Origin: Octopus sinensis
Lineage: Eukaryota
Assembly (NCBI RefSeq): GCF_006345805.1
Contig: NC_043010.1
Location: 49,972,001 to 50,036,000, forward strand
Length of the DNA stretch: 64,000 nucleotides
Reading direction: 5' to 3'
Shown here: positions 5,391 to 49,400 of the stretch, piece after piece
Position numbering within the stretch: position 1 is the first letter of the stretch
Layout of the letters: every line of letters starts with the position of its first letter
Position numbers and translations under genes: made by a program
The notes under the pieces: generated by a model
What the model was told of the DNA's origin: nothing
Databases searched by the model: none
The model's input: only the letters and a program-made list of their open reading frames with translations

Positions 5391-5393
5391 TTG

Positions 5394-6000: not shown

Positions 6001-6579
6001 TCGCTTCAATTCACCTCTCTCTCTTTTTCTCTTTCTATAACTTCCATTCTCTCTATCAAGCACATTCTCTGTATTTTCCCTTCATTCTCACCCTCATCTC
6101 TGTTCTCCCCCATCACCAATACTGTCATACAAGATGTCCAATCCAGTGCTAAGTACTAGTGCTGCAGGAGATGCTTTATTTCTAGCTCAAGCAACTCAAG
6201 TATTTTAGACTGGGTGGCAGCGATAACATCAAAAGACAAATGGTAACCTTGCAAAGCACAACTTAGAATCCCACTAGCAATCTACCCCAATCCCAACTTA
6301 ATCTTCCTCACTTGCAATTTATCCCAAATTTATCACCTTAAACATCCTCCATGGAAATGTACCCCAAATCCATACTTAAGCTCTCTCACCTGCTATCTAC
6401 CCCAAACCCCAAGCTTGTCTCCCTTATCTGGAATCTGCCCCAACCTGCTGTCACAGCAAAGCAAAACAAAACACAGCAAAACAAAACAAAACAAAGCAAA
6501 ACAAAAAACAAAAGAAAACAAATACCAAAGTGACAATCTGGATAAGCTAGGGTTTTCTGAAAAAGAGATATCAGCCAGC

Positions 6580-8687: not shown

Positions 8688-8907
8688 CCCTTTAGTGTTT
8701 AAACCAGCCATATCTGGCCCAGATATTATACATGTTTTATATTCAAACTGGCCATATCTAGCCTCTCACACCTAACCTACATTGACTTTCTAAAAATAAA
8801 CTATCACATCATTGAAACCTCAAAGCTATAAGATAATGCATGATTAATTCAAAACAATTTGAGTGAAAAAGTATTACATTTAACCGAGTAATCTGAACAC
8901 TAAAGGG
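8688..8907. mobile_element. piggyBac-type MITE (family 1)
   Basis: TTAA|CCCTTTAGTGTT..AACACTAAAGGG|TTGA; internal sequence shared with 55772, ~57525 and 63348. Confidence 0.75.
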
Positions 8908-9014
8908 TTGATCCTTTAGCATTTAAATTGGTCATTCAAAACAACCAGATCCAGCTACTCTACAATGCCATTCTAAAAATAAACCATCACATCAAAATCT
9001 TGAAGCTATGAGAT

Positions 9015-9230
9015 ATCATCATCATCGTTTAACATCCGCTTTCCATGCTAGCATGGGTTGGATGATTTGACTGAGGACTGATGAACCAGATGGCTGCACC
9101 AGGCCCCAATCTTGATCTGGCAGAGTTTCTACAGCTGGATGCCTTTCCTAATGCCAACCACTCTGAGAGCTTTTATGTGCCACTGGTATGAGGGCCAGTC
9201 AGGCGGTACTGGCAACGACCACGAAAAAAT
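9015..9230 (-). mobile_element. RTE 3'-UTR end (family D) with (GAT)n tail
   Basis: CATCATCATCGTTTAACATCCGCTTTCCATGCTAGCATGGGTTGG..CTGGATGCCTTTCCTAATGCCAACC; same as the end of 42960-44030 and 49392-50130. Confidence 0.8.
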
Positions 9231-9739
9231 CATGTTTTTTTTTTTTAAATAATATAAGATTAATTCAAAACAATGTGAATAAATAAGTATTGCGTTTGAT
9301 AGTAGTCTGAATGCGAAAGGGTCAAAAGGATCAACTGAATAAAGTACTTGTTCCTCTCTATCATTTAATGAATAATAAAGCTGTCCTCTCTGCTTCCTCA
9401 TAGCCAATGGCACTTCTGACTTTCTGTTCATAACCTCTCAGGTTACGATTCAGTCCCCTATGGTTTTGCATATCGTAGGTGACAGATGAAAGATGTGACA
9501 CAAACAAGTACAGACACAACACTGGTTTTTTGGAACCTTCAGTTCCAAAGCGTTTCTGAATTACAGATTTTTCTGAACCAGGGTTGGTCACCTTGGTCTT
9601 TGTTAAACAAATGTTAAATTTACTTAAATAATTAAATGAAATGCAGGCACCTGTACATTAGTGTAAATGATACAAATTTAATAATATCGTACTGAGGAGG
9701 GTACTAGTCAGTGCAAGGTGCCAGTAAACTAGTTTGGTA

Positions 9740-10108: not shown

Positions 10109-10539
10109 GCTGATAGAATTTGAAGTTCATGCTAATAAATTAGATAGAAATAAAAGATAATGAATCTTTCTGAGTTGTATATACTCATAGGGCTGGTTTC
10201 CTGGTTTCTGTGGCGTACACTCCTCGCCTGGATGGAATGCCAGTCCATTGCAGGATTACTCATTTTTGCTAACCGAATGAACTAGAGCTATGTGAAATGA
10301 AGTGTTTTGGCAAACACACTCTAAATTAAACAAAAATTGAATTTAAATAATTGAATGAAATGCAGGTAGCTGTACATTAGTATAAATGATACAAGTCTGT
10401 GAATACTATACAGTGAAGGGTACTAGTCTGTGCAAAGCATCACTAAATTAGTCTGGTAGCTGTGGGAATTTGAAGCTCTGGCTAATAAATTAGATATATA
10501 TATAAAGCTTAAAGATCCTTCCTGAGTCATATAGACTCA

Positions 10540-13686: not shown

Positions 13687-16600
13687 TAAAGATAGATAGA
13701 GAGGGGAGGAAAAAGAAGAGAAAGGAAGGATGGAATTACTTGATTACAGATGTTTTATGTGGGTGGTTGACTCATTCCATGATTATATTTAAAGCTGTTT
13801 CTGAGAAGTAAATTTGAATTAAATATTAGTTTCCATAACAACTACAGATTTACTCCAGACCAACCCCACCCCACCCTACCCCACCCCGCGAGCCACCTGC
13901 TTTGTTGCAGCTTTAGTATTTATTCTACACTGCTGAAGTTTGTAGGTGCACACTGGAGCCAGACCAATTGTCCACTCAGTTCAATGCATCACACACACAC
14001 ACACACAAATCTGTATATCCACACACGAATTTTGAAAAAAAGAAAAAAAACCACTGTGAATGAGAAAGAAAGGGAGAGAAAATAATAATAATAATAATAG
14101 TTGTTGAAAGTAGTAACAGATGTGTGATTCTATGTCTGACAGAATGACGTCAATGCTCCAACCAACTGCAAGACTGAAATAATAATATCGGATTAAAGCA
14201 GATGGAGTCACAGCTGGCCAAAACAATAGGGTGCCAGCTAGAGATGTTTGTATCCCTTAAGTCCATTTAACTATAAACAGACATGACCATTATCAGCTGC
14301 CAAGTAGTGTTAGATTGGCAGAAAGTTTTACAGCATCGGATAATATGCCTTGCAGTATTTTGTTCCAATTCAAGGCGGTGAGCTGGCAGAAATGTTAGCA
14401 CACCGGGCAAAATGCTTAGCGGTATTTCGTTTGCCATTATGTTCTGAGTTCAAATTCTGCCGAGGTCAACTTTGCTTTTCATCCCTTCGGGGTCGATAAA
14501 TTAAGTACCAGTTACGCACTGGGGTTGATGTAATTGACTTAATGCCTTTGTCTGTCCTTGTTTGTCACCACTATGTTTAGCCCTTTGTGGGCAATAAAGA
14601 AATAAGTATTTTGTTCCAACTCTGAGTTCAAATCAGGCTACAGTCAACTTTGCCTTTCATCTCTCTGGGGTTGGTAGCATTCACCAATTCCCTCTCCACA
14701 AAATCACTGTCCTTTGCCTAAATTAGAAACAGTCAATGGGATTGCATTATTTAGTTACATTATTTTACAATTTAAGTTCAAATCCTACTGAGAACCATTT
14801 TTGTCTTACATTCCACCTGGGTCAAGAAAATAAATACGAGTCAAGGACTGGAAACTGATTTAATCAACCATCATCATCATCAATGTTCGACCGTGGTCGA
14901 GACAATGGAATTGACCATGCTACACCAGACTTCACGGTCCATCATAGCATTACGGAGGTCCTGTTGCTGGATGCCTGTATCCCTGGAGATTACATCAGGG
15001 TAGGAGAGTGTGCGCCCTCTGGTATTGTGAGTAGATGGCTTCCAGAGGAGAAGAGTAGAAATTACTTCTTTTTTCAGCTCTACAACAATGTCCAGCAAAC
15101 TGGACTCTCCTACCTTTCACAAGAGATGACACAGGTGGTAGTTTCCCATATATTTGCATTTTGGTTGGATGACGCTTCCAAGAGAGATTTTGAGCTCTCA
15201 TAAGGAGGTGAGTGTAGGTTCCATCCAACCACCTCTCAAGCTTCTTTGATAATGTCCAGATTTCTGAGCCATATAGTAGAATTGGTTCGACTGAGGCTTT
15301 GAAGATTTCAAGTTTGAAGTCTCTACTTAGATTTGATGACCAGATCTTAATCAACCATGCCCCTCACTTCAAATTCTGTGGACTTGAACAAGTGTTAGAT
15401 ATAATACCTTGCAGCATTTGTTCTAGTGCATTAAGTACTGAGTTCAAATCCCACAGAGGCCAGCTTTGCCTTTTATTCCTCTGAGCTGAATAAAATAAAG
15501 TACCAGTCAAATACTGGAGCTGATTTAGTTAACTGACCTCACTCAGCCCTGAAATTTGTAGTCTTGTGCCTATGTTAGAATATACTAATATTATGATCAT
15601 CTACTCATGGTTTTCTCCGTCACAACATATGAATGAGAAAAGAAGGGGGTGATAGATGAATAAGGAAGGAAGAGGTGATGGCAAACTGGTAGGGGGAGCA
15701 TTTCAACTCTGTGTGAATATATGTGTGTGAAAAAGGGAGATATGTGAATGTGTGTGTGTGTGTGTAATAGAAGTGGGATAGTGAACATTTAATGCTGAAA
15801 GGAAAAATCAAACAGCATTTCAACTCTGAGTATATGTGTGTATGTGTGTGCATGTACAAGGAAAGTATGTGAACCAGCATTCTTTCAGTAACAAACGATG
15901 ATCGATGTCATATCTCAAAAGACAACCATTAGATAACATTGACAGATGTATTAATTTGATTTACCATCCATATTTATATATAAAATACTACAATTAGGCA
16001 TAATTTTTGACGGTACGGGACCAGCTAGTTTATAATAATATTTGATAGATTAGGGTGGTTAGCTGTAAAATCGTTACTATGACAGAAAAATACTTATAGG
16101 GATTTCTTTTGACAATATGTTCTGATTTCAAATGTTGCCAAAGCTGACTTTTCATCCTTTCAGGATAAATAAAATAAGTACCAGTTTCACACTAGGGTCA
16201 ATGTAATCAGCTAGCACACTCTCCTGCAATTGCTGGCCTAGTGCCAAAATTTGAAACCAATAATATTTAATATGAGGTAACCTTAAGAAAGAAAGATGAC
16301 AAAGGAATAAAAGATTATCTTATGAACTTGCATTAGCTTACAGTTGTTTCTGCTATAAAATGCAGTGGACTCACAGTACACACACACACATAGTAATACA
16401 GTTGCTTCATTCCTACTTGGTAAAATAAAATGACACCTGAATTAAATAAAGACCTGGAAGGAATTAACAGGAGTTACTGACAGGAATGTGATATAAGCAA
16501 ATCTAAAATTCCATTCCTTGCCAGTATAACTATAACTGAGCTTATACAAATGAGCTGCAAATTTCTGGACATAATCAAGTGCCTTAACCTACCTCAGTAG

Positions 16601-24000: not shown

Positions 24001-27000
24001 ACTCTGTGGGGTGGTTGGTGTTAGGAAGGGCATCCAGCTGTAAAAATCCTGCCAAAACAGTCACAAAAGTCTGGTGCAGGCTTCTATCTGGCCGGCTCCT
24101 GTCAAACAGTCCCACTCATGCCAGCATGGAAAGCGGACATTAAACGATGATGATATACATAGGATGCTGAACCTTTCATGTGAGATGACAAAGGACCGAG
24201 ATGCCTGGCGCATTGCTGTACTCAAAAAGACCCATACACTGCAGCAAAGAAGTTAAGACTGGTTCCTCTGTTGGTGTAAAACACTTGTGGCAGTGTCATA
24301 TAAAAGCACCTGTGAGGTGCCACAGAAAAATGCCTGTGCAGTGCCATGTAAAAGCACCAAGCACACTCTGCAATGTGATTGGCATTAGGAAGGGCATCCA
24401 GCTATAGAAACCATGCCAAATCAGACTGGAGTCTGATGAGGCTCCCCAGCTTGCCAGCTCTGGTCAAACCATCCAACCCATGCCAGCTTGGACAACGGAT
24501 GTTAAATGATGATGATGGCAAATACAATGTACTACTTCTAGTTTCCATCTAATAAATAATATCACAAAACTTTGGTTGGCCTGAGGTAATAGTAGAAGAC
24601 ATCTGCTCATGGTACCATGAAATGGGGCTGAACCTGAAACCATGCAGTCGTGAACCAAACTTCTTAACCACATAGTCACACCTTTGACATTCAGAAAATA
24701 GGCACTATTCTGAAAATACCTTTTATCATACTATCCAATTAAGATAACGTTCTAACAAAGTTACGTATCTCTCTCTCACACACAAAAGCACGTATCTCTC
24801 TCACACACACGAAGGTATGTATCTCTCTCTGTCTCTCACACATACACACACACACACACATGTATAAATCCCATATCATTACATTAAAAAGAGACCTCTC
24901 AAAAATCCTATGGAAATGATGTACCTGGGAAATAGTAAGTCCTTGTATTCGAACATAATGGTTTAAAAGCTTCTGGGCAGCACATTTTGCCTCTTCACAT
25001 AATTTGGATATAGGAGTTACTCCGGTTGTGTCTTCCATCAGAAGCTGTTCTTCAGTCAGCACAACCTGTTGGATAGAAAAGGAATTATTGTACAAATAAC
25101 TTAAAGAAATGTTTCATAGGATGATGAAGCATTGATAATGGAATGACAAGTGTGTTATGAAATCTAAGAGGGAAAGAGAAAGCAAAATACACCAAATAAA
25201 AAAGTGAACAAAAACTCTATGTGTGTGTGTATTTAACGATAATGCATTTGTATACTTGTGTGTAAGAAAGCAAGGTTTGACCCAATATGTATGAACAGCA
25301 CATGACCAAGTTAGTTGTAAAGATCCCTTCAGTCATGAATGACCATAGGATTGCATCTAGAAAGTTACCCTCCAAGGTATAAGTCTGGGTAAGGTTGTTG
25401 AGGGAAGACTAGCAGTCTCTCATGCATACCAGCCTCTCCTCTCCACACCACTGACATTATCCAAGGGAAAGGCAAAGGCTGATACAGCTTGGCACCAGTG
25501 ATGTCGCAACTCATGTCAACAGCTGAGTGAGCTGGAGTAACGTGGAATAAAGTGTCTTTGCTCAAGAACACAATGCACAGCCTGGTCCAGGGGAATCAAA
25601 CTCACCACCACATGACTGTGAGCTTGATGCTCTAACCACTGAGCCATGTGCCTTCATATCTTCCTATATAGGTGCAATACCATGGTCATTCATGACCGAA
25701 GGGGATCTTTTTTATATTTCTATAATTAAATATTATTAGGAATTGTATTAAAAAAAAATTCTCAAAATAATTTGTGTATTGTAGAAGTGTAACCAATTTA
25801 TAGCACATAAACCTTAACAAACAAAATCTTATATAAACCCCCACCAAGGGCCATATGGACCCCAGTTGAGAATCACTGATCTACACAATCTCACCACGTC
25901 TTTAAAACTTGTGAGTGACTGTTATGTAGCAGTCATCACTTTTAAATATGTGTATGTGTCAGAGTACACTCACCAAATGTGATATGATAGAATTACTGAA
26001 ATCTTCACAGAGTCTTGAGAGAATTAATAACAATGAAGGTGGAATAGACCCTCGTTCAGCAGCACCTTCACAGAAATCCTGTAACAAAAAAAAAAAAAAA
26101 AAAGAGAAATGACATACACCTCAATACTTCCAAACACATGTATCTATATAGCCTCTATACACAAACTGATTTATTAACATTGGATCACCAAGGTCAGAAC
26201 AAATAAGACTTATGGCACAATATTTGGAAAAGATATCTTATGGTCAGTTTTGTAGGATTCCAGTTACACAGAGGATGAAGAACTGCAGATGTCTGAGTAT
26301 ATTTTTATTAGCTTGACATTTGGCATGTTTTAATATATTTAGAGTTTCATGTAGTGATCATAGCAGAAGCATGGAAGATACATTTTTATTAGAGAACCAC
26401 AATCATTATTAATGCTTAGCAACAGGTCTTTTGTTCAGAACGCTTTTTCCAATTCAGCTTCTTATGCATTGAGAGCTCTCCCTGACACATCACCAATCAC
26501 CACCATCTTTTTTTAAAACTTTACCCCAGGAAGACATGGGCCAAAGTACTGAAGAAAAACCTCAGGATGCTGAATTGTTCAGAGGAGATGAGAAAGGACT
26601 GGGATATCAGGTGCCTTGAAGACCCATCCTCTACAACAGAAGTGTTAATACTGCTTTCCCTGATGAAGGGAATTGGCCCGCAAGAGTCCTGTGCTGGCAC
26701 CACATAAAAAGTACTTGTGACAGCACCATGTAAAAATGCTCACAACAGTGCCATGTTAAAAGCACGCAGTACACACAGTAAAGTGGTTGGCATTAGGAAG
26801 GGCATCCAGTCACAGAAACCAAGCCAAATCACACTGGAACCTGGTGCAGCTCTCTGGCTTGCTAGCTCTGGTCAAACTGTCCAACCCATGCCAGCATGGA
26901 AAGCAGACATAAAAAGATGATGATGACTCCCATCTAGTCCTATAATGTGAGAGAGCCATGTATCTCTCCTACAGTAAGAAACTTGTGCCTGCTCTTCCTT

Positions 27001-30000
27001 TCACACTTCAACCTCTCAACATCTAGCATGAAGCCATTTCCCTCTCTACAATAGTCCTTCTCAGTTGAGCGGGATATTAGTTTTGCAAGTTACATGGTGA
27101 CCTCACTTGTGCTGGTGCCACAAAAAAAGCATCCAGTACCCTCTGTAAAGTGACTGCATTAAAAAGAACAGAAACTGCACCAAAGCAGACACTGGAGCGG
27201 TCCACTGACTTGTTGAATTCTGTTGAGTTATCCAACCCATGCCATCATGAAAGACAGACATTAAATGATGATGATGATGACAATGATGTTGATAATGGGA
27301 TTTTAACTCAAAGCACATTAAGCTGTAATGAATACTGCAAGGTATTCTATGAACACCCCATTTATTCACTGTCCTTTGCTTCTGAATTATTCAATGATGG
27401 ATACATATGATGCAGCTGCTAACAAGAAAAGCTACAGCAATAAATCTACTTTGTATACATAACGTTGGTGTGTATTTACACTAAATGGAAAATATTATGT
27501 CACCAAAGTGACAGTTATTTATTTCAGAGTTGTGTGCCCTTCTTAAAAGAAATAGCATTCCTCATTTAATCTTTTGATGATACAAACTTTCTCTTCTAAT
27601 ATGATCGAAATTAAAATCTTCCACTAATGCTTCAAGTTAATTCATGTTCCCAACACCAGCTTGATAATGACAAAATTATTTTACTAATTTCTTTCTTTAT
27701 TTTCAAAATTAATTGTAACAAAATCAGTGTATTTCAATAGAAATATGATAACAAAAGAGTTTAGGAAAAAAAGAAGAAATCATTGTTAACAACAAAAAGT
27801 ACTCACAGAACAAACTTGGCATATATGCCTAATAAAGTTAGTAAGTATTCCTTCTCTCACATCTTGTATACAGAAAGGGCCCCTGAAGTATGGCTTCATA
27901 GCAAAAGTGATATCAGGGGAAATAAATGCCTGTAAAAATGAACAAAGAACCAATTTAAAACATTTCATCAAGGGCAGAGGTCACCAAACTTGGGACAGTA
28001 TCTACACAAACTCAAAATATCAGTTCCAAGCTAATATTTTTATGGTTATATTTGTTGTTATGATTTTTAAATCACAAATAACATTTTTAAGAGATTAATT
28101 TTTTATCAAATTCTATAAATGTTACATTACAGTCAGCTAAAATTGATTTTTATGTAGAAGCTGTAAAAACACCTAATTTATAAAGGATGCTAACATCCAG
28201 TGTTCAAAGATATAAACAAACAAATCATGGAAAACTGTGATCCCACAGGACTTCCCGAATGGCATGTCTAGCAAAAATTACCTGGCATTCTTTAAGTAGT
28301 GTAACCCACCTGATAATATATATATATATATATATATATAATAGAAATATTAAAATTACTAAGTCTCTCTAAAAGAGATTACGGCAGCGTTACTGGAAAT
28401 TAATTGTTATCGCCATATTAATATGGCAGTCTTATAGATATAAGACTAAAGCTGTCGCTGATTAGCTCCATGAGGCCATCGCCTTAAGCTAGCTATTTGA
28501 CACACAAACTGTGTCCATTATAACCCTTCGAACAAGGGAGGTCAGCCGCTTCACACTGCCAGTCAGACAGCTACAGACGCGTTTCAGGGTATTTGCCCTT
28601 TGTCAATGTAGCGTAGTCAGACCCAGCAGGTGTTGCCACTGATCGTCTTTGTTCGAAGGTTTTATTTACCTAGTTTATGTGTGAGTGTATATATATATAC
28701 ACATCTATGTTTGTATGACTGTGTATAGAAGAATATATTAAAACAATGAATTAAAACCTATCTGATTTTCACATTTCATTATTTACAATTTTACAATATT
28801 ATAAAAATAGAATATTATATATTTATTATGATAACACTAGTACTTTCATGCATTATGCAATCATCAGGTTTATACAGTAATAGTAGTGACAGTCATGTCC
28901 CACAATTGATAACTGTAGTGAATTGATGAAATTTGTATTTTAAGTACCAATTGTTAGGCTCCAAGCAGATTGAATCTTACAAATAGTATTTTGACTAATC
29001 AGTATGTGGCTTAGAAGTCATGTTTTGGTGAAACCTGTTATGTGTGAGTGTATGTGTACATACAGACAGAGAGACAGACAGACATACACACACACACACA
29101 TATATCTATATATCTTTTGCCTCTCATCTCCTAGCAGAAAATTGCCTTCACCTTCACCCCAGAGTTTGTAGTCTTGCAAACAGCAAGATGGCCTCACTAG
29201 TGCTAACAGCATGAAAAATGTGCCCTGTACATCAGTGTTTCTCAACCTTTTTACCCTTGCGTAACCCTTAAAATAAATTACATGTGTCAAGGAACCCCTG
29301 CACAAAAAAAATTATATACCATATCTTTCTCATATTTTTTTCATTGTAGGTCACATGGTAAATATCATATATATATTCACACACTTATTGCAGTGGTCCT
29401 TCAGTTTTTCTAAGCCCTGTAAAAGAATTCAGAAGGTTGGGCTTCCAACCAGGCCTTTCGCAATACCCCTGAAACCAGAAACTTTTAAATACTCCCTTGC
29501 ATGCATGCATACATACATGCATACATACATACATACATGCATGCATGCATGCATACATACATACATGCATGCATGCATACATACATACATACATACATAC
29601 ATACATACAGACAGACTACATGTATGGCATACCTGTAAGTTGGCGAGAACAGATTTAATTTGCTCCAATACCGAAGTTTCAGTATTGTTCAATAATTCTG
29701 ATAAGCTGTCAGAACTATCTTGTTTGCCAATCTGTTTCGGAGCAGCTAAATTCTGACGAACATCTGTTAAGCAGTCTGAAATTTGAAGATGATAATAATG
29801 AGGATAGTATTCAATAAAAGGGAGACGGATGTTAACAATTAAATTTACTCCAGTATATTACTGGTATTTATTTCATCAATATACATACACACATAATTAA
29901 GTAAATGACAAAGAAACAGGAAATTATGCAAGAACTCTATTAGCTTACAGATGTTTCTGCCATAAGATGTAATGCACTCATTTTGAAACTCTAGGAAGCT

Positions 30001-34400: not shown

Positions 34401-37400
34401 CCCTGGATCAGTACTTTATTTGATCAATCCTAAAAGGATAAAAGTCAAAGCTGACCCAGTGGAATTTCCTCACACAAATTAATCCTTTTGTTATCACATT
34501 TCTGTTGAAATACACTGCCTTTGTTTCAGTTAATACTGAAAATAATGGCAAATTCATTGAAATAACTGTCATTATTAATCTGCTGTTTGGAACATAAAAT
34601 GGACGTAAAATTTTGATTGAAAGTCTTAATTAGAATTATTTTAGAACAGAATTTGGGTCATAGAACTGAGGGATAGCTGAGGTAGGTTGGTATCAAAAGG
34701 GTTACTCTTTTACTTGTTTCAGTCATTTGACTGCAGCCATGCTGGAGCACTGCCTTTTAGTTGAGCAAATTGACCCCAGGACTTATTCTTTGGAAGCCTA
34801 GTACTTATTCTATCGGTCCCTTTTGCCGAACCGCTAAGTTACGGTGATGTAAGCACACCACCATCAGTTGTCAAGCGATGTTGGGGAGGGGAGGGACAAA
34901 CACAGACACACAAACATATACACACACACACACATACATATATTTATATATATACATATATACGACGGGCTTCTTTTCAGTTTCCATCCACCAAATCCAG
35001 TCACAAGGCTTTGGTTGGCCCGAGGCTATAGTAGAAGACACTTGCTAATGGTGCCATGCAGTGGGAATGAACCCGGAACCATGTGGTTCGTAAACAAGCT
35101 ACTTACCACACAGCCACTCCTGCGTTAAATACTAATGTATATAATCCTTCCTCCATAGGTACAAGGCCTGAAATTTTTGGGGAAGGGAATAGTCAATTAC
35201 CCCATGCCTTGACTGGTACTTATTTCCTTGACCCCAAAAGGATGAAAGGCAAAGTCAACCTCAGAAGAATTTAAACTCAGAATGTGAAGATGGGTGAAAT
35301 GCCTCTAAGCATTTTGTCTGATGTGAAATTGATTCTGCCAGCTTGCTGCCCTAATAGTAATATAAATGCTAATTTGTGCACCTTGAGGGATGGGAAAGAA
35401 GCCCCTTCGAAGGGCAGAGGAACTTGTTAGGGTCAACAACATCATCATCATTTAACGTCCGCTTTCCATGCAAGCATGGGTTGGACGATTTGACTAAGGT
35501 CTGGCAAACCAGATGACTGCATCAGACTCCAATCTGATCTGACAGAGTTTCTATGGCTGGATGCCCTTCCTAATGCCAACCACTCCGAGAGTGTAGTGGG
35601 TGCTTTTACGTGCCACCGGCACAAGGGCCAGTCAGGTGGTACTGGCAGTGGCCACGCTCAAATGGTGCTTTTTATGTGCCACCTGCACAGGATCTTCATT
35701 TGGTGAAACTGCACAACATAGTCTGTTTGGAAGAGGCTCTTCAGCCAATGGTCAGTCTAGGGTCAACCAATCCAGTCAGCAAATTATTGCCAACTGGAAG
35801 AACTGACAATTCATCAACCCACATTAACTACTTGAAAACACTATAGAGTTCTGAAACTTCAGAGTATCACCAATTGAAGCTCAATGACTAGTAGTAACAT
35901 AAAAAAGAGAGAGAACACAATATTGTTGTTTTGAATGTAAGTATTTGTAATCAAATATCGTGGAGGCGTGTGGCTTAGTGGTTAGGGTGTCAGCATCATG
36001 ATCATAAGATTGTGGTTTCGATTCCTGGACCAGGCGACGCGTTGTGTTCTTGAGCAAAACGCTTCATTTCACGTTGCTACAGTCCACTCAGCTGGCAAAA
36101 ATGAGTAACGCTGCAATGGACTAGCATCCCGTCCAGCTGGGGAACACATACGCCATAGAAACCAGGAAACCGGGCCCATAAGCCTGGTTAGGCTTGAAAA
36201 GGGCGCATTTATTTTTTATATTTGTAATCAAATATACATGTGAAAATAGAAATAACAACAAAACAAGTGGATATGTAGGTATGTACGAAAGTTGATGTGT
36301 AGAATTGTGATAAAATCTATTACTATTGGAGCCATCATGTAGGCTTGAGCAGGTCTTTCTACTTCTTCTATCAGTGGAATTACTCCGGATTGTAATTGTA
36401 TCTGCCTTTCCAGTTCAGCCAAATCTTCATCAATCTTTTGACGGGCACTAGAAATATAGAACACGCCAGAAAATAATAAAAATATACAAAATGACAGTTT
36501 TTTTACACATTAATTTAATATCTACTCAGTTATCTGTCTTACATACATATACACTGAATAGGAAATGGACCTCAATGAAGCAGTAACAAGTTTCTTGTTA
36601 CTGCTTCACTCACTTGTATCTCCAGATAAAGTTATCCAGCATTAGAATCAATGCTGTGTTACAAGAGTGTGTGTGTGTGTGTGTGTGAGAGGTAGAAGAA
36701 GGTAAGAGAGAATGACAAAATGAAGGAAAGAATAAGAGGGGGAAAAAACAGAAAGGGAAGAAAGAAAGAAAAAAGAAAAAGAAATTCAGAGAAAGAATGA
36801 GAGAAAGAGACAAAGTAAAAAACAGACAAACAAAGAAAAAATGATATGAAAAGAAATGAAAGACAGACAGAGAAAGAATTAAAGCAAAGGAAAGACAGAA
36901 AATGTGAGAATGATTTCCATTTCAAAACTACAATTCATACTCACAAAATCTCACATCATTTCTAGCATGGCTAATGTTGGATTTAAGCGTAAATTAAACA
37001 AGTTTACACTTAGGACCCTATTAACAACAGGGGTTTTATAATAATTAGAAGATATGTTTTCAGTTTTTATGAGATGTTCGAGTTGCAGGTATGGCAGTGT
37101 GGTTACAATGGTTGCTTCCCAACCATGTGGTCATGGGTTCAGTTCCACTGCATGACTCACTTCTGTCTGATCCATGCAATCAAGGAAAAGTGGACATTAA
37201 ATAATGATGATGTCATAGTGTAAATTTCCAAGAAGGGTCTTCCATGCTTTACGTAGCTTAGCATGATTAGACTGTGTGCCACCTGGGGTGGCCCTTCCAT
37301 TTGCCACCCCTACCTTCACAAAAAACACATATTGCCTACAGCAGACCCAAAAGTGGTACCCCTTTAACCCTTTCGTTACCAACCTGGCCAAAACTGGCTC

Positions 37401-40400: not shown

Positions 40401-43400
40401 TATGCCTGGCGTGTTAACGATTTTGCCAGTTCACAGCCTTATCCACAACTGCAGTAATTTTGTTACAAAATATAATACAGAAAAATGCAGCTCAAAAGTT
40501 ACCATTTTAAGACTGTTGTTAAGATCCACAGCAAATCACAGACAGTCCTCGCCTTATTTATGGAAAACAACTTCTAGGCTGGATTCCAAGAATGGCAGGA
40601 ATGCTGGGTCTGGTATATTGTGGTGCAAGGTGACTATTTCAAAAGAGATGATGTTAAAACTTAGGTAAATAAGTTATTTTTTTTATTAAACATAACTAGT
40701 CCAGGAACCTTTTGATACCACCTCGTACTTAAATGTAAGAAGTAGCGTGTGAGCATAGCTCATTTAAAAGTTAACTTTTTTTGGCAAGAGTTTAATGAAA
40801 ATTTTCCCATCAGTTAAACTATATAGAAAGGGTGATCAGTTATAAAATAATACTTTGAGAAAAAAACACAGATCCAATCAATTTTAGGGTTTAAGCAAAG
40901 GAGAAAAATATTTTTAAAATTGTAGAAGGGTCATTAAAACAAAGACAATCCTAGAATAATTATATTTTTTCCTTCTTTACATTCAGCTATAGCAAAGTTT
41001 CTTACCTAACTGCTTGACTGTAAGCTTTCATCTCTACACATTTCTTTAAACGTGCTGGAAGTTCAAACAAGAACTGGAGCTAGAATCCAAAGAAAAAAAA
41101 ATTAAAAGGAAATTTAATTAACAATTTCAATTAAAATGGAAGCAAAAATTTGTGAAGAAAATGCAATTAGCACATGGAAAAAAAAACATTTATATTTGGA
41201 GATATAATTTTTATCAATTTAAAAACAAGGTATTTTTAGATTATTAAGCTTGTATTTAATAACAAAACAGTTTTTAAATATTTACATGTACATCCTCTTT
41301 TAGTTAGTTTGATCTCCAAACATCATCATATCATAGTGATGTATTTAGATTAGAAATTCAAATCCAATCTGTAACTGTTGACACACAAAAAAATATTTCA
41401 TTCTCTTTTCAGGGGTTAATACTTTGAAAAGTTATAATCTAAAGAACACATTTTAAACATTTCCGGCTGTTAAAATCCTAAAGATCTTTGATAAAAATGA
41501 TTTTTGCAAATGCATAATTGAATTAATACCTTAAATACCAAGCTTGAGATCTTTCATTTTAAAATGTGCAAATTTAAATTAAACCCTTCCGTCAAAGAAC
41601 ATTTTGTTTAGATATCTACCAAACATTAACTTAATAATGGTTTCAAATTTTGCCACAAAGCCAGCATTTTTTGGGGGAGGGGACTAGTCAATTATGTCAA
41701 CCCCCAGTGCCCAACTGGTACTTATTTTATCGACCTCAAAAGGATGAAAGGCAAAGTTGCCCCTGGTGGAATTTGAACTTAGAATGTAAAGATTGACAAA
41801 ATGTGGTCAAGCATTTTGCCCAGTGTGTTGATGATTCTTTTCTACTCTAGGGAGTCGATTAGATTGACCTTAGTATGAAACTGTTCGCCTTCGGCCCAGT
41901 GCGTCCATGCTGCCAACAAAGCATGCAGAATTCTGTTCTTGATTCGACGGTCATTCGGAATGCTCACAGCAGCCATATTCCTACCACTCTATGTCACGCT
42001 GGTGAGACCCATATTGGAGTACGGGATTCAAGCCTCTTCTCCTTATCTTCTCAAAGACATACAGCATCCCGAAAGAGTCCAGAAGCTGGCTACCCGCATG
42101 GTTCATGGTCTCAAAACTTTGTCCTATGAAGAAAGGCTGAGGACGCTCAACCTTTATTCTCTTGAAAAACGCCGCCGCCGTGGTGATCTCATTCTCGCCC
42201 ACAACATCATAAGCGGAAAGTGTAACCTCTCGAAAGAGCTGTTCTTCACTCCTGCTCCAGAGCGTCGGCTGCGGGGTCATTCCGAAAAGCTCTACCTGTG
42301 ACGATTTCATCTCAATCGAAGGAGAGGAGCTTTCTCCGTCCGGGTTGCGGATCCGTGGAACAAGCTGCCAGACGAGATGGTGAAGATGCTGACGACCGCT
42401 TTGTTCAAAGCCTCCCTTGACCTCAAGTGGCCTGAACTCTTTACATGAACACCACCATGTACTTAACTCCATGTCCCCCTACATGGCCTTGCTATTTGCT
42501 TTTGAGCCAAATTAACTAACTAACTAACTTAATTCATCGATCCTAAAAAAATGAAAAGTAAAGTTGAACTTGGTGGAATTTGAACTCAGAACAAAGACAG
42601 ACGAAATACAACTAAGCATTTTGCCCATTGTGTTAATGTTTCTGCCAGTTCACAGTCTAATCTTAGTTTATTAAAGACATTAATTGTTTTACTAAATTGC
42701 TCCAAATTCTTGATTAACTTCTGAATTAACTAAATAATATAGACAATGTACTCCATCAGAAATATGAACCCAAATGTAAGACAACAGGATTCCTGAGAAT
42801 AAAACAAAATATTCCTAATATAAAAAAGGAAATGTAAAGACAGACAAATTGCTACTATGCATTCTTCCCGGTGTGCTAATGATTCTACCAGATTGTATTG
42901 ATGTTAAAGAGAGATTGTCACAGCAAAATGAAGGAGTATATAGAAAACATTAGCAGAAGTCATCATCATCATTATTGTTTAACGTCTGCTTACCATGCTG
43001 GCATGGGTTGGACAGTTTAACTGATGATTGGCAAACCAGAAGGCTGCACCAGGCTCCAATCTGATCTAGCAAAGTTTCTACAGCTGGATGTCCTTTCTAA
43101 TGCCAACCACTCCGAGAATGTAGAAGATGCTTTTTATGTGCCATCAGCACAGAGGCCAGTCAGGTGACACTGGCAACAACCACGCTCAAACGGTGCTTTT
43201 TACGTCCCACTAGCATGGGAACCATTCAGGCAGCACTGGCAATGACCATGCTTGAATGGTGACTTTTATGTGCCACCAGCACGGGACCAGTCAGGCAACA
43301 CTGGCATCGACCACATTTGTATGGTGCTTTTTACATGCCACTGGCACAGGTGCCAGTCAGATGGTACTGGCATTGGCCACAACAATGATTTCACTTGACT

Positions 43401-46400
43401 CAACAGGTTTTCTCAAGCACAGTATATTGCCCAATGATTGAAGGGTACTCTTGAATGGGCCAGTTATGCAACACTGGCATAGGCCGCAGTTATAGTCTCA
43501 CTTGGCTTGCCGGGTCTTCTCAAGCACAGCATATATCCAAAGATCTTGGTCACTTGTTATTGCCTCCATGAGGACCAATGTTTGAAGGTAGTGCTTCACC
43601 ACCTCATCCCAGATCTTCTTGGGTCTACGTCTTCCACAGGTTCCCTCCACTGTTAGGGTGTAACACTTTTTCACACAACTGTCCTCATCCACACGCAACA
43701 CATGACCACACCAGCGCAGTTGTCTCTCTTGCACACCACACCTGATGCTTCTTATGTCCAACTTTTCTCTCAGGATGCTTACCCTGTTGTGTATGCACAC
43801 TGACATTACACATCCAGTGGAGCATACTAGCTTCATTTCTTGCAAACTTATGCATATCCTCAGCAGTCACGGCCCATGTTTCACTGCTGTGTAGCATGGC
43901 AGTTTGCACACATGCATCATACAGTCTACCTTTCACTTTGAGCGAGAGGCCCTTTGTTACCAGCAGAGGTAGGAGCTCTCTGAACTTTGTCCAGGCTATT
44001 CTTATTCTAATAGCTATGCCTAGCAAAATGAGTTACCTTGATAGACAAAAGAATAACCAGGTATAGCACAACTTGCTTTTTAAAAAAATTACTAACTGAA
44101 CCCTTTTAATACTAATCTGTATAAGACCTTGGTTCTATGACAAAATATTCTAAATTTAAACCTTCTGTCAACCTTTCATATTATTTTTTATATTCCAAAT
44201 ACCAACTTAATCTTATCTACTAAAGGCACAAGACCTGAAATTTGGAGTTGGGGGTCAGTTGATTAGATTGATCCCACCACCGCCATCACCACCAGTACAC
44301 AACTGGTACTTTATTGACCCCAAAAGGATGAAAGGCAAAGTCGACCTCAGCGGAATTTGGTCTCAGAATGTAAAGACAGATGAAATACTGCTAAGCATTT
44401 TGCCTGGTGTGCTAACAATTCTGCCAGCTTGCCACCTTTCCAAATACCAAATACTAACTTAATAATGACAGTTATTTTGCTAAATTATTCATTATATTCA
44501 AAATTAATTGAAACAAAGGCAGCATATTTCAGAAGAAATATGATTTCATATTTTGGCACGAGGCCAGTAATCTTTTAGTGAGAGGGCTAAGTCAGTTACA
44601 TCAACCCCAACTGGTACTTAATATTTTATCAAATCAGAGAGGATGAAAGGCAAAGTGGATCTTGGCGGGATTTGAACACAGAACGTAAAATGCCAGAAGA
44701 AATGCAGGTAAAGGTGTGGTTGTGTGGTAAGAAGTTTGCTTCCCAAATAGTTCCAGGTTCAGTTCCACACTGTGGCCTCAGGCTGATCAAAGCCTTATGA
44801 GTAGATTTGATGGACCAAAACTGAAAGAATCCTATTATGTGTGTGTGTGTGTGTGTGTATGTACGCACATGCATGCGTATGTGTTTCTTTTTTTTGTGTC
44901 TGAGTTTGTCTTCCACCAATGCTTGACAACCAGTGTTGGTGTGTTTACATTGCTGTAACTTTACAATTCAGCAAAAGAGACTGATAGAATAAGTACCAGG
45001 AGAGATAAAAAAGGAGTACTGGGGTCAATTTATACAACTAAAACTTCAAGGTGGTGCCCCAGCATGGCCACAGTCCAGTGACTGAAACAAGTAAAAGATA
45101 AAAGATATGCCTTTTGGTTAATGATCTGATGATTCTACCACTTCACCAGCTTATTTCAACAGAAATATCATTAAAAAAAAAGGGGTTAAAGTCAAACAAC
45201 ATACTTTTTTTAGTAGGGCATGAACACCAGCAAGCTTTGTTATCTGCTGTCGTTGATCTTGAAGGGTGTCACTAATCTTGGCACTGAATTCTGTTATTGA
45301 AGCCATGTTGGTTGCCAGTAAATCCATCTCATCTTCCATTTTCTTAAAATCGTTTTTCATCTGAAATAAAGATAAATAAATTGTATGTGGGATGATTTAG
45401 AAGTGGTGAAATGTTATGCATAGTGTTGTGATGAGAAATGGTTACCGAGAATTATTTTTATTCAACACAAACAATGAACTACAGTATTTAAAGAACATTT
45501 ATTTCAAAAGGCTGGCTGTCAACCTTCAACCAAAATATGCCATAAGTTATCAGGACCAGATATTGACTTCTTGTCCTCCACAGTACAAGCGTTAAGGTTG
45601 CAACCAATGGTGAAAAGGATTTGGCCTGCCAGGGTCCTGTGCTGGTGCCATGAAAAAAAGGCACCAGTTAAAAGCACCCAGCACACACTGTATAGTGGTT
45701 GGCATTAGGAAGGGCATCCAGCTGTACAAGCCAAACAAAATCAGACTGGAGCCTGGTGCAGCCCTTTGGCTTGCCAGCTCTGGTCAAACTGTCCAACCCA
45801 TGTCAGCATTTGTTTATAAAAACATTTGTAACATCAATTAAATTGTGTGAGTGTGTGTATGTATACACACACACAATTGACTGCCATGAAGTTCCTGTCT
45901 ACCAAATTTTATCCACAAGTTACTGTTCAAGCTTAGGCTGTGGGTCAAAAACATTCACCCAAGGTGCCATGCAATGGGGTACTTCTTAACCTAACAGTCA
46001 TACTTGCACCTTAACAATACAAACATTATATCCCTCTACATTGCTCCTATCTTTGCAAGTTTTCATTATCACATTTGAGTTCATATAAGAAGCATTATTT
46101 TTCAAAAACAAAAAAGTCTCCAAAAGATCATTCCAGGTCCTATATGCAAAGTATCCCTCCCACATAAGCTTTAATGCATTAAAATCCCCTTTTTTTGCCC
46201 AAATATGCACTACTGAAATTAGGGTGCATCTAATATGTCCATATGTTTTTTATGCCAACCTATATGGTAGTTATGGATAATATCCATTTTTCTCAGACAC
46301 AAGGATAAACAAAAAAAAAAAAAACCCAGAGAAAATAAATGGAAAATTTCATAAAGAACCAGGGAGATTCATATAACTTTACGGAAATAAAAGCTAAAAC

Positions 46401-49400
46401 AATAAGTGAATAAAAAATATATATCACCAACATCAATGCCAACAGATAAGAGCTTACAAGATGACTTCACAACCAAATCAGTTTTAAGAGACTTCTTACC
46501 TTTCTGATTGTATCAGTAGCACTTATAAACTTGTTATAATTTTCATACACCAGGGTCTGCATTTCACTGTCCAGAGCACGGATTTGACGGACTACATCAG
46601 TCTCTCTGTCCATGAGCTCAGTCAGAGACTTCTCTCGGATAAGCTTGTTAAGGAATATATCATGCTTAAAATGGGCACCGTCAATGTCACATGGGTCGAC
46701 GGTTGTCATACCTGGTTTCTCTTCGTCTATTCCGTAATACATTTTCAACATTCCTCTGCTCTTACGGCGCATATCATCCGTCTCATCTGTCAATAAAATA
46801 TACATATATTTTTTAAACAGTTTTAATTCCATTTATATGTATGTTAAAAGAGAATGTTTGCTATGGTGTATCATTTATTCTTCTATTCGTTTCAGTCATT
46901 GGGTTGCAGTCACATTGGGCAACACTCCAAAGGAAGGGTTTAGTTGATCAAATTGGCCCCAGTAATTGCTTTAAATCTTCTATCAGTCTCTTTGAGCTGA
47001 ATCACTAAGTTATGGAGATATAAAGGAACCACCAACAGTTGTAAAGCAGTGAGAGACACATATACACACACAAGCTTCTAAATAAAAATCATTCACAAGA
47101 CAGTGGTCAAACTAGGGTTATAGTAGAAGACATTTGTCCAAGGTGCCACACAGTGGGACTGAACTTGAAACCACATGGTTGTGAAGAAAACTTCTTAACC
47201 ACACAGCCATGGCTGTCTGTTTATTTGTTGTGTGCTGAATTCCTATTTATATTGCATTAACCTTTTTGCCTTGTGGAGGCACATGGCCTAGTGGTTAGAG
47301 CAGCGGACTCGCGGTCGAGGTATCGCAGGTTTGAATCTCAGACCGGGTGATGTGTGTGTGTATGAGCGAAACACCTAAGCTCCATGTGGCTCCGGCAGAA
47401 GGTAATGGTGAACTTCTGCTGACTCTTTCGCCACAACTTTCTTTCACTCTTTCCTCCTGCATCTTGCAACTCACCTGCGACGGACCAGCGTCCCATCCAG
47501 GTGGGGAACCTATATGCCAAGGAAACCGGGAAACCGGCCCTTATGAGCCAGGCATGGCTCAAGAAGGAACAAACAAACCCATTTGCCTTAATGTTGAAAT
47601 ACTGCAATGCTTTTTATTTTCTTTTTTATTTCCACTGTTTTAACCCTTTAGCATTCAGATTATCCTGTCAAATGTAATACTTATTTTTTCACATCATTTT
47701 GAATAAATAATGTATTATCTTGTGATTTTGAGATTTTGATAATGTGGTTGTTTATTTTCTTACAATGACATTGTAGGGCAGGTGTGATAGGCTAAGTCTG
47801 TCCGGTAGAATATTTGGGCCAGATATGACCAAATTTTCATACAGCCATAGGTCAGATAAATTACTGAACCAATTATTTTTCTTTTTCAGTTCGATGTTCT
47901 TCTTATCACCAACCACTCAACCATGAATTAAAATGAAACCCATTTCCACATGAAGAATGTGTCTAGGGCACAACATAATGACTGTAGTAGTTAGGTGTAA
48001 ACCTGTGATCTGTGTGGTCAGCCATCTATGTATCATACTTAATGTAAATACCTAATTAAAGGGCAATTTACTGCAGTGTTCATTCAGAGATAACATTTCA
48101 TATCGATGTGGTTTGCTTAACCCTTTAGCATTGAAACTGTCTCAACTGTGCCAGATCTGTTATAGAGTTGATGAAACCATTGTTTATATTGTGAACGAAT
48201 GTCCTCAACTTGTCTAAAATCATTATAAGTTGTGGCAACATGATGAGATAGCGAAAGTGATACATCAGAAACTTTGTGAAAAGTGTGGGCTAGAGAGAGA
48301 CAAGGTGTGGTATGAGAGCAGCAGAGAAATCCTGTGAGATTTCCTAATCCAAACAGACCAGGTGCTTGAGTATAACAAGCTGGAACTAGTAGTGGAGGAC
48401 AGGGTGAATCACATGCGCTCATTAATTGATGTCGTGTGCCCCTTTGACACATGAATAGTCAAGAAAGAAGGTGAGAAAATAGACATATATAAAACTCTCT
48501 TAAATATGAGATGGCTTGATTGAGAAAAATGAAGAGGGTGAAGTTAGTGCCAATTATTGTTGGGGCCTTGGGGATGGAAAAGGTCAGATCTGACAGGTTT
48601 GAACATAAAACAGGTAGAATATTTCGGCTGGATATGGTTGGTTTAAATACTACCCCACCTCTCTGATACTATCCATGTAACTAGGAATGACAGTGGATCT
48701 CCCTTATGTCTTGAACCATGCGGCTGAATGTCACAGTGTAATGAGAAATGGCATTGGATCTGACCACATTTAATATTCTATGTCACCATCCTTATCTCTT
48801 TAACACTCTGTATGGGGAGTTGCACAAGATTTGTTCATATCCAATATGATATGCCTTACCATCTCTCTCTTACTAGTGAACATGTAACTGCCATTACAGT
48901 GTCTCTGCCATTATTTTCCCCATTACTCTCTCCTTTCTTACCCTTTCAACTCAGTCACTCTTTCTTTCTTCCATCAGTATTCCTGTACTGTCTCTCTATA
49001 GCCCTTTCAACCAGTGACTGTCCTAATCATACTCTCCCCCACTTTCTTCCTCATTCTTCTTTTATCAACGTTCTCTCTTAACTCTTGTTCTGTTAATATT
49101 GGTTTCAAATTTTGGCATAAGGCTAGCAACTTCGAGAAAGGGGTTGAGTCAATTACATCAAACCCAGTGCTCAACTGTTACTTATTTTATCAGCCCTGAA
49201 AGGATGTACGGCAAAATCAACTTTGGTGGAATTTGAATTCAGAATGTAAAGACAAACAAAATGCTACTAAGTATGCCTGGTGAGGTAATGGTTCTGCAGC
49301 CCAGTGACTTTCATGTTCCATTAATATTAACATAGCTTATAAAATAACTATTCACCTCTACCCCACCACTCTTATGATACTAACATAAGTTTATGCTGTG

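Follow-up and report, generated by a model that had tools for sequence, protein, structure and literature searches.

The conserved hammerhead core consists of C3U4G5A6N7G8A9, G12A13A14, an A15.1-U16.1 pair and H17 (PMC7151607). In the canonical metazoan type-I hammerhead, helix I is 6 bp long and helix II 4 bp, the loops carry conserved tertiary-contact nucleotides, and helix III has 1-2 bp and a palindromic loop (PMC4209133). Penelope-like elements carry minimal hammerheads, with an extra nucleotide that separates position 9 from 10.1, a G10.1-C11.1 pair, a palindromic 15.2-16.2 segment and a long helix II; a U3-A8 covariation is documented in the hammerheads of these elements (Cervera & de la Pena 2014, PMC4209133), which also show an insertion bias for microsatellites (PMC8557442). 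Non-LTR retrozymes form units of 350-390 bp and low GC in molluscs, and coral and mussel monomer retrozymes cleave in vitro, with RtcB circularising such products (Cervera & de la Pena 2020, PMC7229834). Dispersed monomers of retrozymes are common, and in Xenopus 42-44% of the copies are intronic (bioRxiv 10.64898/2026.07.22.740005). Where a hammerhead is single and its helix III short, cleavage is poor (6-22% per hour in axolotl); none was detected for the single motif of a Penelope-like-element minimal hammerhead. Finally, the amniote HH9 (RECK) and HH10 (C10orf118) are type-I hammerheads with sequences akin to the Schistosoma type, on the sense strand of introns of protein-coding genes; what defines them is that they are deeply conserved at orthologous positions.

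We analysed a 64,000-nucleotide stretch of Octopus sinensis DNA (the window), in which one intron of Vps51 holds two hammerhead-like motifs, HH1 and HH2. The reading that we favour, with somewhat better than even confidence, is that they are two relics of small non-autonomous retroelements that bore hammerheads, lying side by side in the same orientation and unrelated to each other. Both would be solo monomers, of the non-LTR retrozyme or Penelope-like pLTR kind, with a compound TA/CA microsatellite as their insertion site.

27930..29632, minus strand (the Vps51 sense strand): Vps51 host intron (GT at 29632, AG up to 27930)

The upstream exon ends at 29633 (...SVLANLQ) and the downstream exon begins at 27929 (AFISPDITF...), with at least 11 conserved coding exons of Vps51 counted upstream of the intron. 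Both motifs lie within the intron, on the sense strand, at the coordinates given in the original prediction; the cleavage points that it had placed from the sequence, after 28838 in HH1 and after 28576 in HH2, are also correct as predictions, as is their 262-nt spacing. The description of both motifs as type I hammerheads holds for HH2, which is canonical; it holds for the core of HH1 but not for its helices, which are weak, or its fold, which is disfavoured.

28570..28612, minus strand: HH2, a canonical metazoan type-I hammerhead variant (sequence, N79 model, fold)

HH2 is made up of a 6-bp helix I (GCUACA, 28612-28607, paired with UGUAGC, 28575-28570), the core segments UUGACAA (28606-28600) and GAAA (28585-28582), a 4-bp helix II (AGGG/CCCU) with CAAAUA as loop 2, and a helix III of 1 bp plus palindromic CGCG (ACGCGU). 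A UAC internal loop (28615-28613) is found directly 5' of helix I. This is the canonical type-I architecture, including the tertiary-contact loops, and cleavage is predicted after C17 at 28576, at a GUC site. The core matches at 10 of 12 positions, all of them canonical, and the two exceptions covary: U3-A8 replaces C3-G8 (UUGACAA instead of CUGAUGA) in a Watson-Crick covariation, the one seen in Penelope-like-element hammerheads. In addition, pair 10.1-11.1 is A-U where the consensus has G-C. Neither the U3/A8 core nor this A-U pair appeared in the original prediction. In thermodynamic folding, the hammerhead fold of HH2 is approximately its minimum free energy (MFE) structure.

A covariance model was built from a single published ribozyme, the Schistosoma-derived N79 (sequence from PMC12550524). 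With this N79-only model, the HH2 region (28623-28558, minus strand) was the top match, aligned over its full length with 19.2 bits and an E of 0.0055 (window, 128 kb). Relative to N79, compensation in helices I and II is complete, and there is identity in the UAC bulge, the CAAAUA loop (6/6) and GAAACG..CGUC. Indeed, HH2 shares with the Schistosoma Sm-alpha/N79 type (newt, Xenopus and human HH9/HH10 relatives) the UAC internal loop, the lengths of helices I and II, loop 2, GAAACGCGUC with palindromic 15.2-16.2, and the GUC site (PMC4209133). It differs from that type by U3-A8, by A10.1-U11.1 and in not being matched by Rfam. The hammerhead models of Rfam 15 were silent on both HH1 and HH2, at gathering as well as at E-value thresholds, whether we searched the whole window, sub-regions of 81-801 nt or, at E<=10, segments of 81-85 nt. 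Judged from its sequence and from the model and folding results, HH2 reads convincingly as a genuine metazoan type-I hammerhead variant of the retrozyme/Penelope-like kind.

HH2 belongs to a larger structure, whose features are as follows.

28522..28662, minus strand: 141-nt imperfect hairpin extending HH2 helix I (inverted repeat, folding)
28341..28674, minus strand: block U2, comprising the HH2 hairpin and several small hairpins (334 nt, GC 42%)
28316..28340, unstranded: (AT)12.5 microsatellite found by TRF, the 3' boundary of U2 in minus-strand sense

The 141-nt hairpin, which HH2 caps as its tip, folds with an MFE of -60.5 (z -5.8) when read on the minus strand and of -65.3 (z -7.9) when read on the plus strand, and its arm duplex reaches -48.2 as against -24.4 in shuffles. 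Better folding of the plus strand is a behaviour expected of any inverted repeat, e.g. a MITE. It would be extremely improbable, in our estimation, that the hairpin is a MITE derived from a DNA transposon, or some other inverted repeat, and its likeness to a hammerhead accidental. The terminal inverted repeats of about 16 bp, a possible 4-bp TTAT duplication on either side (28518-28521 and 28662-28665), the plus-strand folding and the silence of Rfam are what such an origin would produce; it leaves unexplained the 10 of 12 core matches with covariation of the remaining two, the exact helix lengths, the UAC bulge, the loop 2 identity and the rank of HH2 as top N79 match (E about 0.005). Block U2 as a whole has a circular-fold z of -5.6 and is located between a (TA/TG)n tract and the (AT)12 tract. 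We propose that it is a solo monomer of a hammerhead-bearing non-autonomous retroelement.

HH1 presents a different picture.

28831..28873, minus strand: HH1, a hammerhead-like motif whose core is canonical and whose helices are weak (sequence, descriptor match)

Its 5' part reads AUAAAC (28873-28868), CUGAUGA (28867-28861), U, UGCA-UAA-UGCA, U, and its 3' part GAAA (28847-28844), GUAC, U, A17 (28838), GU(G)UUAU, with nominal cleavage after A17 at 28838. CUGAUGA, GAAA, the A-U pair and A17 are all canonical. However, helix I (AUAAAC/GU(G)UUAU) is AU-rich and bulged, helix II has 4 bp with a U.U mismatch at its base and UAA as loop 2, and the only canonical type-I architecture feature present is helix III, 1 bp plus palindromic GUAC. 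HH1 has an additional U after A9 and another before G12, and it has neither G10.1-C11.1 nor tertiary-contact loops; only the core nucleotides are common to HH1 and the Schistosoma type. The hammerhead fold of HH1 has an energy of +0.8 kcal/mol (-2.3 for the best constrained fold) compared to an MFE of -7.0 kcal/mol, with a fold z of 0.13, placing the active fold 4.7-7.8 kcal/mol above a competitor that sequesters CUGAUGA. The N79 model did not align HH1 as a hammerhead. Two other readings of HH1 were tried and discarded: that it caps a decayed hairpin (z -0.77, arm duplex p 0.42), and that it is of type III, with a long helix III (28957-28943/28844-28831) and U17 at 28942, in which case a 3x4 internal loop parts helix I from the core.

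The sequence surrounding HH1 is bracketed by a direct repeat, on which the case for a separate insertion is built.

28702..29037, minus strand: block U1, which holds HH1 (336 nt, GC 27%, unstructured)
29038..29064, unstranded: 27-nt direct repeat, upstream copy (TTATGTGTGAGTGTAT..., 16/16 identical, 24/27 overall)
28675..28701, unstranded: 27-nt direct repeat, downstream copy, in the (TA)n/(TG)n tract that separates U1 from U2

The two copies, which contain an exact 16-mer pair at a spacing of 363, bracket U1, and from its sequence the repeat is a candidate target-site duplication of this block. Note that this candidate duplication sits in microsatellite-like sequence. U1, whose circular-fold z is -0.8, is probably a separate insertion. 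Since the 27-nt repeat flanks U1 and TA tracts flank U2, we consider that the two blocks would have been inserted separately at the microsatellite.

That HH2 is the sole hammerhead relic, HH1 being a chance CUGAUGA...GAAA in an AT-rich, palindrome-rich intron and U1 ordinary intron between microsatellites, is a possibility that we regard as unlikely although of appreciable weight. The window has 13 cases of CUGANGA with GAAA after it, and the disfavoured fold of HH1, its lack of a hairpin context, its failure with both N79 and Rfam models and its missing G10.1-C11.1 pair and tertiary-contact loops are all in keeping with a chance origin. At the helix level of HH1, however, shuffles give 0.005 expected matches per window, and a set of 540 descriptors in which the core letters were permuted, the true one included, gives a mean of 0.013, or about 0.03 once corrected for motif frequency, against 2 matches observed (28867 and 3420, minus strand); the descriptor thresholds behind these counts were fixed after HH1 had been seen, so that they are tuned post hoc. 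The support for HH2 comes from the model-based search and is independent of this descriptor. The 16/16 (24/27) repeat bracketing U1 also stands against chance, as does the probability, about 1e-4, of a chance motif arising within 300 nt of a genuine hammerhead on the same strand. Since 0.005-0.03 matches are expected and 2 are observed, one of which shares its strand with HH2 at a distance of 230 nt, HH1 is probably not pure chance. Returning to the favoured reading of two relics, HH1 would be a degenerate or minimal-type relic in its own insertion of about 336 nt with a target-site duplication, and not a working ribozyme.

The original prediction had taken the two motifs for a same-strand tandem retrozyme, with the caveat that they might be two independent insertions and not one repeat unit. 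The evidence favours the caveat. No 150-450-bp tandem repeat joining HH1 and HH2 was found by TRF, repeat search, blastn or Smith-Waterman with shuffles; the searches for tandem or direct repeats returned only microsatellites and the 27-nt repeat, and U1 and U2 have no significant similarity (p 0.09-0.3 versus shuffles). Two weak collinear alignments of the HH1 and HH2 flanks were rejected as homology, because they contradict each other and score no higher than shuffles do (p 0.09-0.3). An alignment of the four hammerhead-like loci of the window likewise revealed no family relationship past the core. The tandem reading was thus not upheld: the units are unrelated, and head-to-tail 150-450-bp units with a type-I hammerhead in each, by which tandem retrozymes are recognised, are not found here.

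The same prediction envisaged that a 262-nt monomer is released and circularises. In this scheme both ribozymes would be active in the Vps51 pre-mRNA or lariat, and nucleotides 28837-28576, freed with 5'-OH and 2',3'-cyclic phosphate ends, would be circularised by an RtcB-type ligase; we hold it to be highly improbable. In its favour, the NUH sites of HH1 and HH2 are properly positioned and both motifs lie on the sense strand, HH2 adopts the hammerhead fold, and there is the precedent of some monomeric invertebrate retrozyme hammerheads that cleave in vitro and yield products circularised by RtcB (PMC7229834). Against this stand the unfavourable energy of the HH1 active fold, the three consensus departures in HH2 and the 1-bp helix III of both motifs, which form no heterodimer: the helix-III palindromes GUAC and CGCG are not mutually complementary (heterodimer -0.8, homodimers -6.8 and -8.9 kcal/mol). 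Moreover, the inter-site segment does not exceed shuffles in structure (z -1.2) and its ends are not brought together; at the circle junction GUGUUA would lie opposite GCUACA, and no hammerhead is rebuilt; and cleavage would part the two arms of the 141-nt hairpin, the sole stable structure. The circularising monomer therefore found no confirmation, given the disfavoured HH1, the incompatible palindromes, the z of the segment and a junction that rebuilds no ribozyme. Efficient double cleavage by HH1 and HH2 is, on these folding models, unlikely.

We then set the two blocks against known mobile elements. A further copy of U1, of U2 or of the hairpin was found neither in the 64-kb window nor in 60 kb from related species nor in JGI metagenomes, so the case for mobile elements is made by architecture and flanks and not by copy number; SINE-like families in the same window have 6-29 copies. 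An exact-pattern scan of the JGI metagenomes with the HH2 helix II/loop gave two matches, both set aside as chance occurrences in coding-like DNA, and a search with a peptide read across the hairpin, intended to pick up repeat copies in public assemblies, gave no candidates. Checks for tRNA/SINE heads and Pfam domains around the motifs returned nothing relevant.

Like non-LTR retrozymes, the locus has a type-I hammerhead with a short palindromic helix III, and its units of about 335-360 bp and low GC resemble those of mussel (350-390 bp; PMC7229834). U2 has the properties of a retrozyme monomer (about 170-400 nt, low GC, highly self-paired), which the 262-nt RNA does not share, and U1 has a z of only -0.8. 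Unlike in non-LTR retrozymes, there is no tandem array, the adjacent units are unrelated, and the region between the cleavage sites is a chimera of two elements that is not self-paired.

The likeness to Penelope-like elements is of another kind. HH2 has the U3-A8 covariation of their hammerheads; HH1 has the extra nucleotide after A9 and the palindromic GUAC of the minimal form; helix III is, as there, a palindrome needing dimerisation; and these hammerheads are mostly dispersed single motifs of truncated elements (Cervera & de la Pena 2014, PMC4209133). A microsatellite target is a further trait in common (PMC8557442). By contrast, HH1 has neither G10.1-C11.1 nor the 7-8 bp helix II (it has 4 bp), and HH2 is canonical, not minimal. 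No ORF coding for RT and GIY-YIG and no pair of hammerhead-bearing pLTRs, which define a Penelope-like element, were found near HH1 and HH2: the one ORF of at least 110 aa overlapping the intron is a microsatellite artefact, and a Pfam search of 8 of the 19 window ORFs that reach 110 aa detected no RT/GIY-YIG. As regards Penelope-like elements, HH1 and HH2 would be at most solo pLTR-type remnants.

HH2 also resembles HH9 and HH10, as a sense-strand type-I hammerhead of Schistosoma-type sequence in an intron of a protein-coding gene. HH2 and its hairpin could accordingly be pictured as an exapted intronic ribozyme or structured RNA, either HH9/HH10-like or a hairpin precursor of small RNA, acting on Vps51 pre-mRNA processing. 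The sense-strand placement and the very stable hairpin fit this picture, and the preserved tertiary-contact nucleotides together with the compensated core pair suggest selection on the fold until recently at least. However, HH9 and HH10 are defined by their deep positional conservation, whereas the flanks here resemble those of an insertion into a microsatellite and suggest a lineage-specific event. In the one distant relative compared (ENA; adjacent exon 72% identical in amino acids), the first 1.5 kb of the orthologous intron showed no similarity and no hammerhead; cuttlefish contigs, about 1 kb long, were left out of this comparison. We give exaptation very little credence.

If the motifs are indeed two relics, HH1 would show essentially no cleavage, and HH2 would self-cleave only slowly in the Vps51 pre-mRNA because of its 1-bp helix III, its lack of a dimer partner in cis, the A in place of G at 10.1 and the U3-A8 core. 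With slow HH2 and non-cleaving HH1, the intron would therefore be tolerated in a housekeeping gene, and no meaningful amount of a defined 262-nt RNA or circle would arise. Catalytic activity of HH2 in vivo in the Vps51 pre-mRNA, alone or with HH1, is in our view very unlikely. Were HH2 active, a housekeeping intron would be cut by an embedded ribozyme, with the effect of releasing a small RNA, linear or circular and with ribozyme-defined ends, or of modulating the expression of Vps51, as an invertebrate counterpart of the amniote intronic hammerheads; active or conserved, HH2 could let one observe, in a natural setting, how the intron of an essential gene tolerates or makes use of a ribozyme on its sense strand. 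If instead the relic reading is true, the locus adds one more dispersed remnant of the hammerhead-bearing retroelements found by the thousand in many invertebrate genomes, and its value is mainly for annotation, as Rfam models miss variants such as HH2. It would also mean that a coleoid cephalopod genome has canonical Schistosoma-type hammerheads, with U3-A8 and intact tertiary-contact loops.

Sequence inspection confirmed that the two motifs lie where the original prediction, a same-strand tandem of type I hammerheads excising a 262-nt and possibly circularised RNA from a Vps51 intron, had placed them, and on the sense (Vps51) strand. It also showed that the core of one of them, HH2, reads UUGACAA and that its positions 10.1-11.1 are A-U, two points that had gone unmentioned. 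The elements concerned are the following (window coordinates):

29632-27930, minus strand: Vps51 host intron, GT at 29632 and AG at 27930
28873-28831, minus strand: HH1, proposed hammerhead, AUAAAC-CUGAUGA-U-UGCA-UAA-UGCA-U-GAAA-GUAC-U-A|GU(G)UUAU; A17 = 28838
28612-28570, minus strand: HH2, proposed hammerhead, GCUACA-UUGACAA-AGGG-CAAAUA-CCCU-GAAA-CGCG-U-C|UGUAGC; C17 = 28576
29037-28702: U1, block holding HH1; 336 nt, GC 27%, circular-fold z -0.8
28674-28341: U2, block holding several small hairpins besides that of HH2; 334 nt, GC 42%, z -5.6

The window is AT-rich (GC 33-44%) and abounds in microsatellites. At least 11 conserved Vps51 coding exons lie upstream of the intron; for the N-terminal one (ORF 46467-46832(-), PF08700 matches), the best database match (95% aa, 81% nt) is in run ERR12945500, which holds Acanthosepion esculentum reads according to the cuttlefish genome preprint (bioRxiv 10.1101/2025.04.22.649952); the contigs reached were about 1 kb each. 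From this the window would belong to a coleoid cephalopod, but not to the cuttlefish family. A microsatellite of (CATA)n/(CATG)n type, some 30 units long (29500-29621), begins within the intron about 10 nt past the 5' splice site and is the source of many spurious miRNA-family matches (mir-297, mir-466 and others) and of an artefactual 133-aa ORF. Similarly, a 1.8-kb low-complexity satellite at 3562-5383 ((AATTTTTGAAA)n type; periods 11/23/35; GC 26% over 4001-6000) caused repeated spurious matches to the U4 snRNA 3' half in a permissive Rfam scan. A mir-252-like hairpin at 6141-6215(+) scores 33.4 bits with Rfam RF00838 against a gathering threshold of 45 (E 2.9e-5 in a local search); its 5' arm, CUAAGUACUAGUGCUGCAGGAG, agrees nearly base for base with the model consensus, and it probably represents a real miR-252 gene scoring under the curated cut-off.

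As judged from its sequence and modelled fold, HH2 appears to be a genuine hammerhead. It fits exactly the published description of the canonical metazoan type I hammerhead, i.e. a 6-bp helix I, a 4-bp helix II, interacting loops, and a helix III of 1-2 bp under a small palindromic loop, and its U3-A8 pair is a natural covariation of C3-G8 in the hammerheads of Penelope-like elements (PMC4209133). With N79, a published Schistosoma-derived ribozyme (PMC12550524), it shares loop 2 (CAAAUA), the UAC adjoining the 6-bp helix I on its 5' side, as well as GAAACGCG..CGUC. We searched the entire window, filters off, with a covariance model built from this one sequence and its known structure: the best match was HH2 (28623-28558(-); 19.2 bits, E 0.0055, a rough value), full-length, its helices I and II compensated throughout, while the core was deleted in all remaining matches. 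The hammerhead structure of HH2 is close to the minimum free energy (MFE) fold (-27.0 vs -28.5 kcal/mol). Moreover, HH2 forms the tip of an imperfect 141-nt hairpin (28522-28662; minus-strand z -5.8, plus-strand z -7.9) whose arm duplex is calculated at -48 kcal/mol, compared to -24 in shuffles. Counting against hammerhead identity, HH2 matched no Rfam hammerhead model, not even when 85 nt were searched at E<=10.

HH1 fared differently. Its 11 core nucleotides are all canonical, and helix I comprises six A-U/G-C pairs and a bulge; helix II has 4 bp, a U.U closing mismatch (equivalently, one unpaired U per side) and a UAA loop 2. The helices alone are calculated at +0.8 kcal/mol and the best structure with the hammerhead helices enforced at -2.3, compared to -7.0 for the MFE fold, in which the CUGAUGA box pairs with downstream sequence. 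Folding of the region is at shuffle level (z 0.13), and it does not belong to a hairpin (z -0.77; arms p 0.42). The N79 model gave no hammerhead alignment, 111-nt search included, and Rfam gave no hammerhead match. By these calculations HH1 is a weak motif, and we do not rate it a working ribozyme.

HH1 could be a degenerate relic or a coincidence, the combination of CUGANGA with a GAAA up to 45 nt downstream occurring 13 times in the window. When helices were required to equal or exceed those of HH1, 0.005 matches per window were expected from dinucleotide-preserving shuffles, and core-letter permutations (540 descriptors including the true one, real sequence) yielded 0.013 on average, or about 0.03 once corrected for the true core pair being 2.2-fold in excess, figures that are optimistic because the thresholds were fixed after HH1 had been seen. 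Two were observed, HH1 and 3420-3375(-). A chance motif of this grade less than 300 nt from a genuine hammerhead, on the same strand, is expected in about 1 in 10^4 windows; we therefore consider a degenerate relic somewhat more likely than pure coincidence, the standing of HH1 as a second relic being doubtful.

The motif at 3375-3420(-) has a canonical CUGAUGA core, a helix II interrupted by an internal loop, GAAA, and a near-palindromic UUGCGA followed by UC, inside a weak 130-nt hairpin (~3335-3465, z -1.75); its hammerhead fold is not favoured, it matched neither the N79 model nor Rfam, and it may be another decayed relic. A further motif, 55606-55642(+), has no helix I but combines CUGAUGA, a helix II of 6 perfect base pairs (AGGAGC/GCUCCU), GAAA and a palindrome, AUAUGCAUAU; its position is upstream of Vps51 and close to a CAP-Gly-domain gene. 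A neighbouring gene, in divergent orientation to Vps51, has a conserved exon at 57233-57385(+), whose counterpart region in a more distant ENA relative is L005/L006 6059-6813; the relative's ORF L006 6059-6373, nearby on the neighbouring-gene strand, carries a CAP-Gly domain (PF01302). The synteny of the two genes is common to the window and the relative, in whose sequences (L005-L007) exons are conserved, the orthologous intron stretch reached shows no similarity, and 60 kb contain no hammerhead. A 20-nt HH2 pattern gave two matches in JGI metagenomes, both chance, and a peptide-handle search found no further copies.

By definition, non-LTR retrozymes consist of a single 150-450-bp unit repeated head to tail, every repeat carrying a type I hammerhead, and the unit spacing here (361-363 bp) is near that of mussel retrozymes (350-390 bp; PMC7229834). 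The tandem reading was nevertheless not borne out: tandem repeat finding (TRF), a repeat search and blastn found no 150-450-bp head-to-tail repeat of the hammerhead unit, and local and global alignments of U1 with U2 were no better than shuffles (p 0.09-0.3). U1 is bracketed by a direct repeat (29038-29064 and 28675-28701; 24/27 identical over 27 nt, with a 16/16 identical stretch, TTATGTGTGAGTGTAT), a candidate long target-site duplication; U2 is flanked by the TA/TG tract of the downstream repeat copy and by (AT)12 at 28316-28340. Neither block has a further copy in the window, where control SINE-like families have 6-29 each. Penelope-like elements are thought to mobilise animal retrozymes. 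They show a microsatellite insertion bias (PMC8557442), which would account for the adjacency of U1 and U2 as side-by-side independent insertions.

Exact 16-20-nt direct repeats also bracket six 280-480-bp segments (8842-9275, 10131-10497, 24021-24404, 35942-36236, 44325-44657 and 47640-48133), which are members of interspersed SINE-like families, each represented in the window by 6-29 partial copies and unrelated to U1 and U2. Three ORFs, 14995-15354(-), 41939-42301(+) and 43498-44026(-), resemble the C-terminal ends of reverse transcriptases (RTs) from non-LTR retrotransposons; they have no significant Pfam domain, and no RT or GIY-YIG match as a sign of Penelope-like elements.

The predicted cleavage sites, 28838 and 28576, are indeed 262 nt apart. 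In HH1 and HH2 alike, helix III is one base pair with a palindromic tetraloop, an arrangement in which an extended helix III requires a second identical copy (PMC4209133). The calculated helix-III duplexes amount to -6.8 (HH1-HH1), -8.9 (HH2-HH2) and only -0.8 kcal/mol (HH1-HH2), so that the two motifs would not help each other in cis. This lone-copy limit agrees with the slow or absent cleavage of published single hammerheads: that of a single minimal Penelope-like-element hammerhead is not detectable (PMC4209133), and axolotl monomers are 6-22% cleaved per hour, dimers being efficient. Two departures of HH2 bear on cleavage, the U3-A8 pair and the A at 10.1, where a guanine contributes to a metal site (PMC7151607). 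Meaningful double cleavage seems very improbable. The 262-nt product would include one arm of the 141-nt hairpin, the 5' arm, and lack the 3' arm; linear or circular, its structure is at shuffle level (z -1.2). Joining its ends would set GUGUUA against GCUACA, and would therefore re-form neither hammerhead nor rod. The -0.8 kcal/mol heteroduplex, the unstructured RNA and this junction lend no support to a 262-nt circle defined by ribozymes.

Solo monomers of retrozymes occur commonly and are evenly dispersed, and in Xenopus 42-44% of them are intronic (bioRxiv 10.64898/2026.07.22.740005). Taken on sequence and calculated structure, HH2 would be a canonical type I hammerhead, in its U3-A8 variant, within a cephalopod intron, and its carrier appears to be a solo remnant of retrozyme/Penelope-like type.
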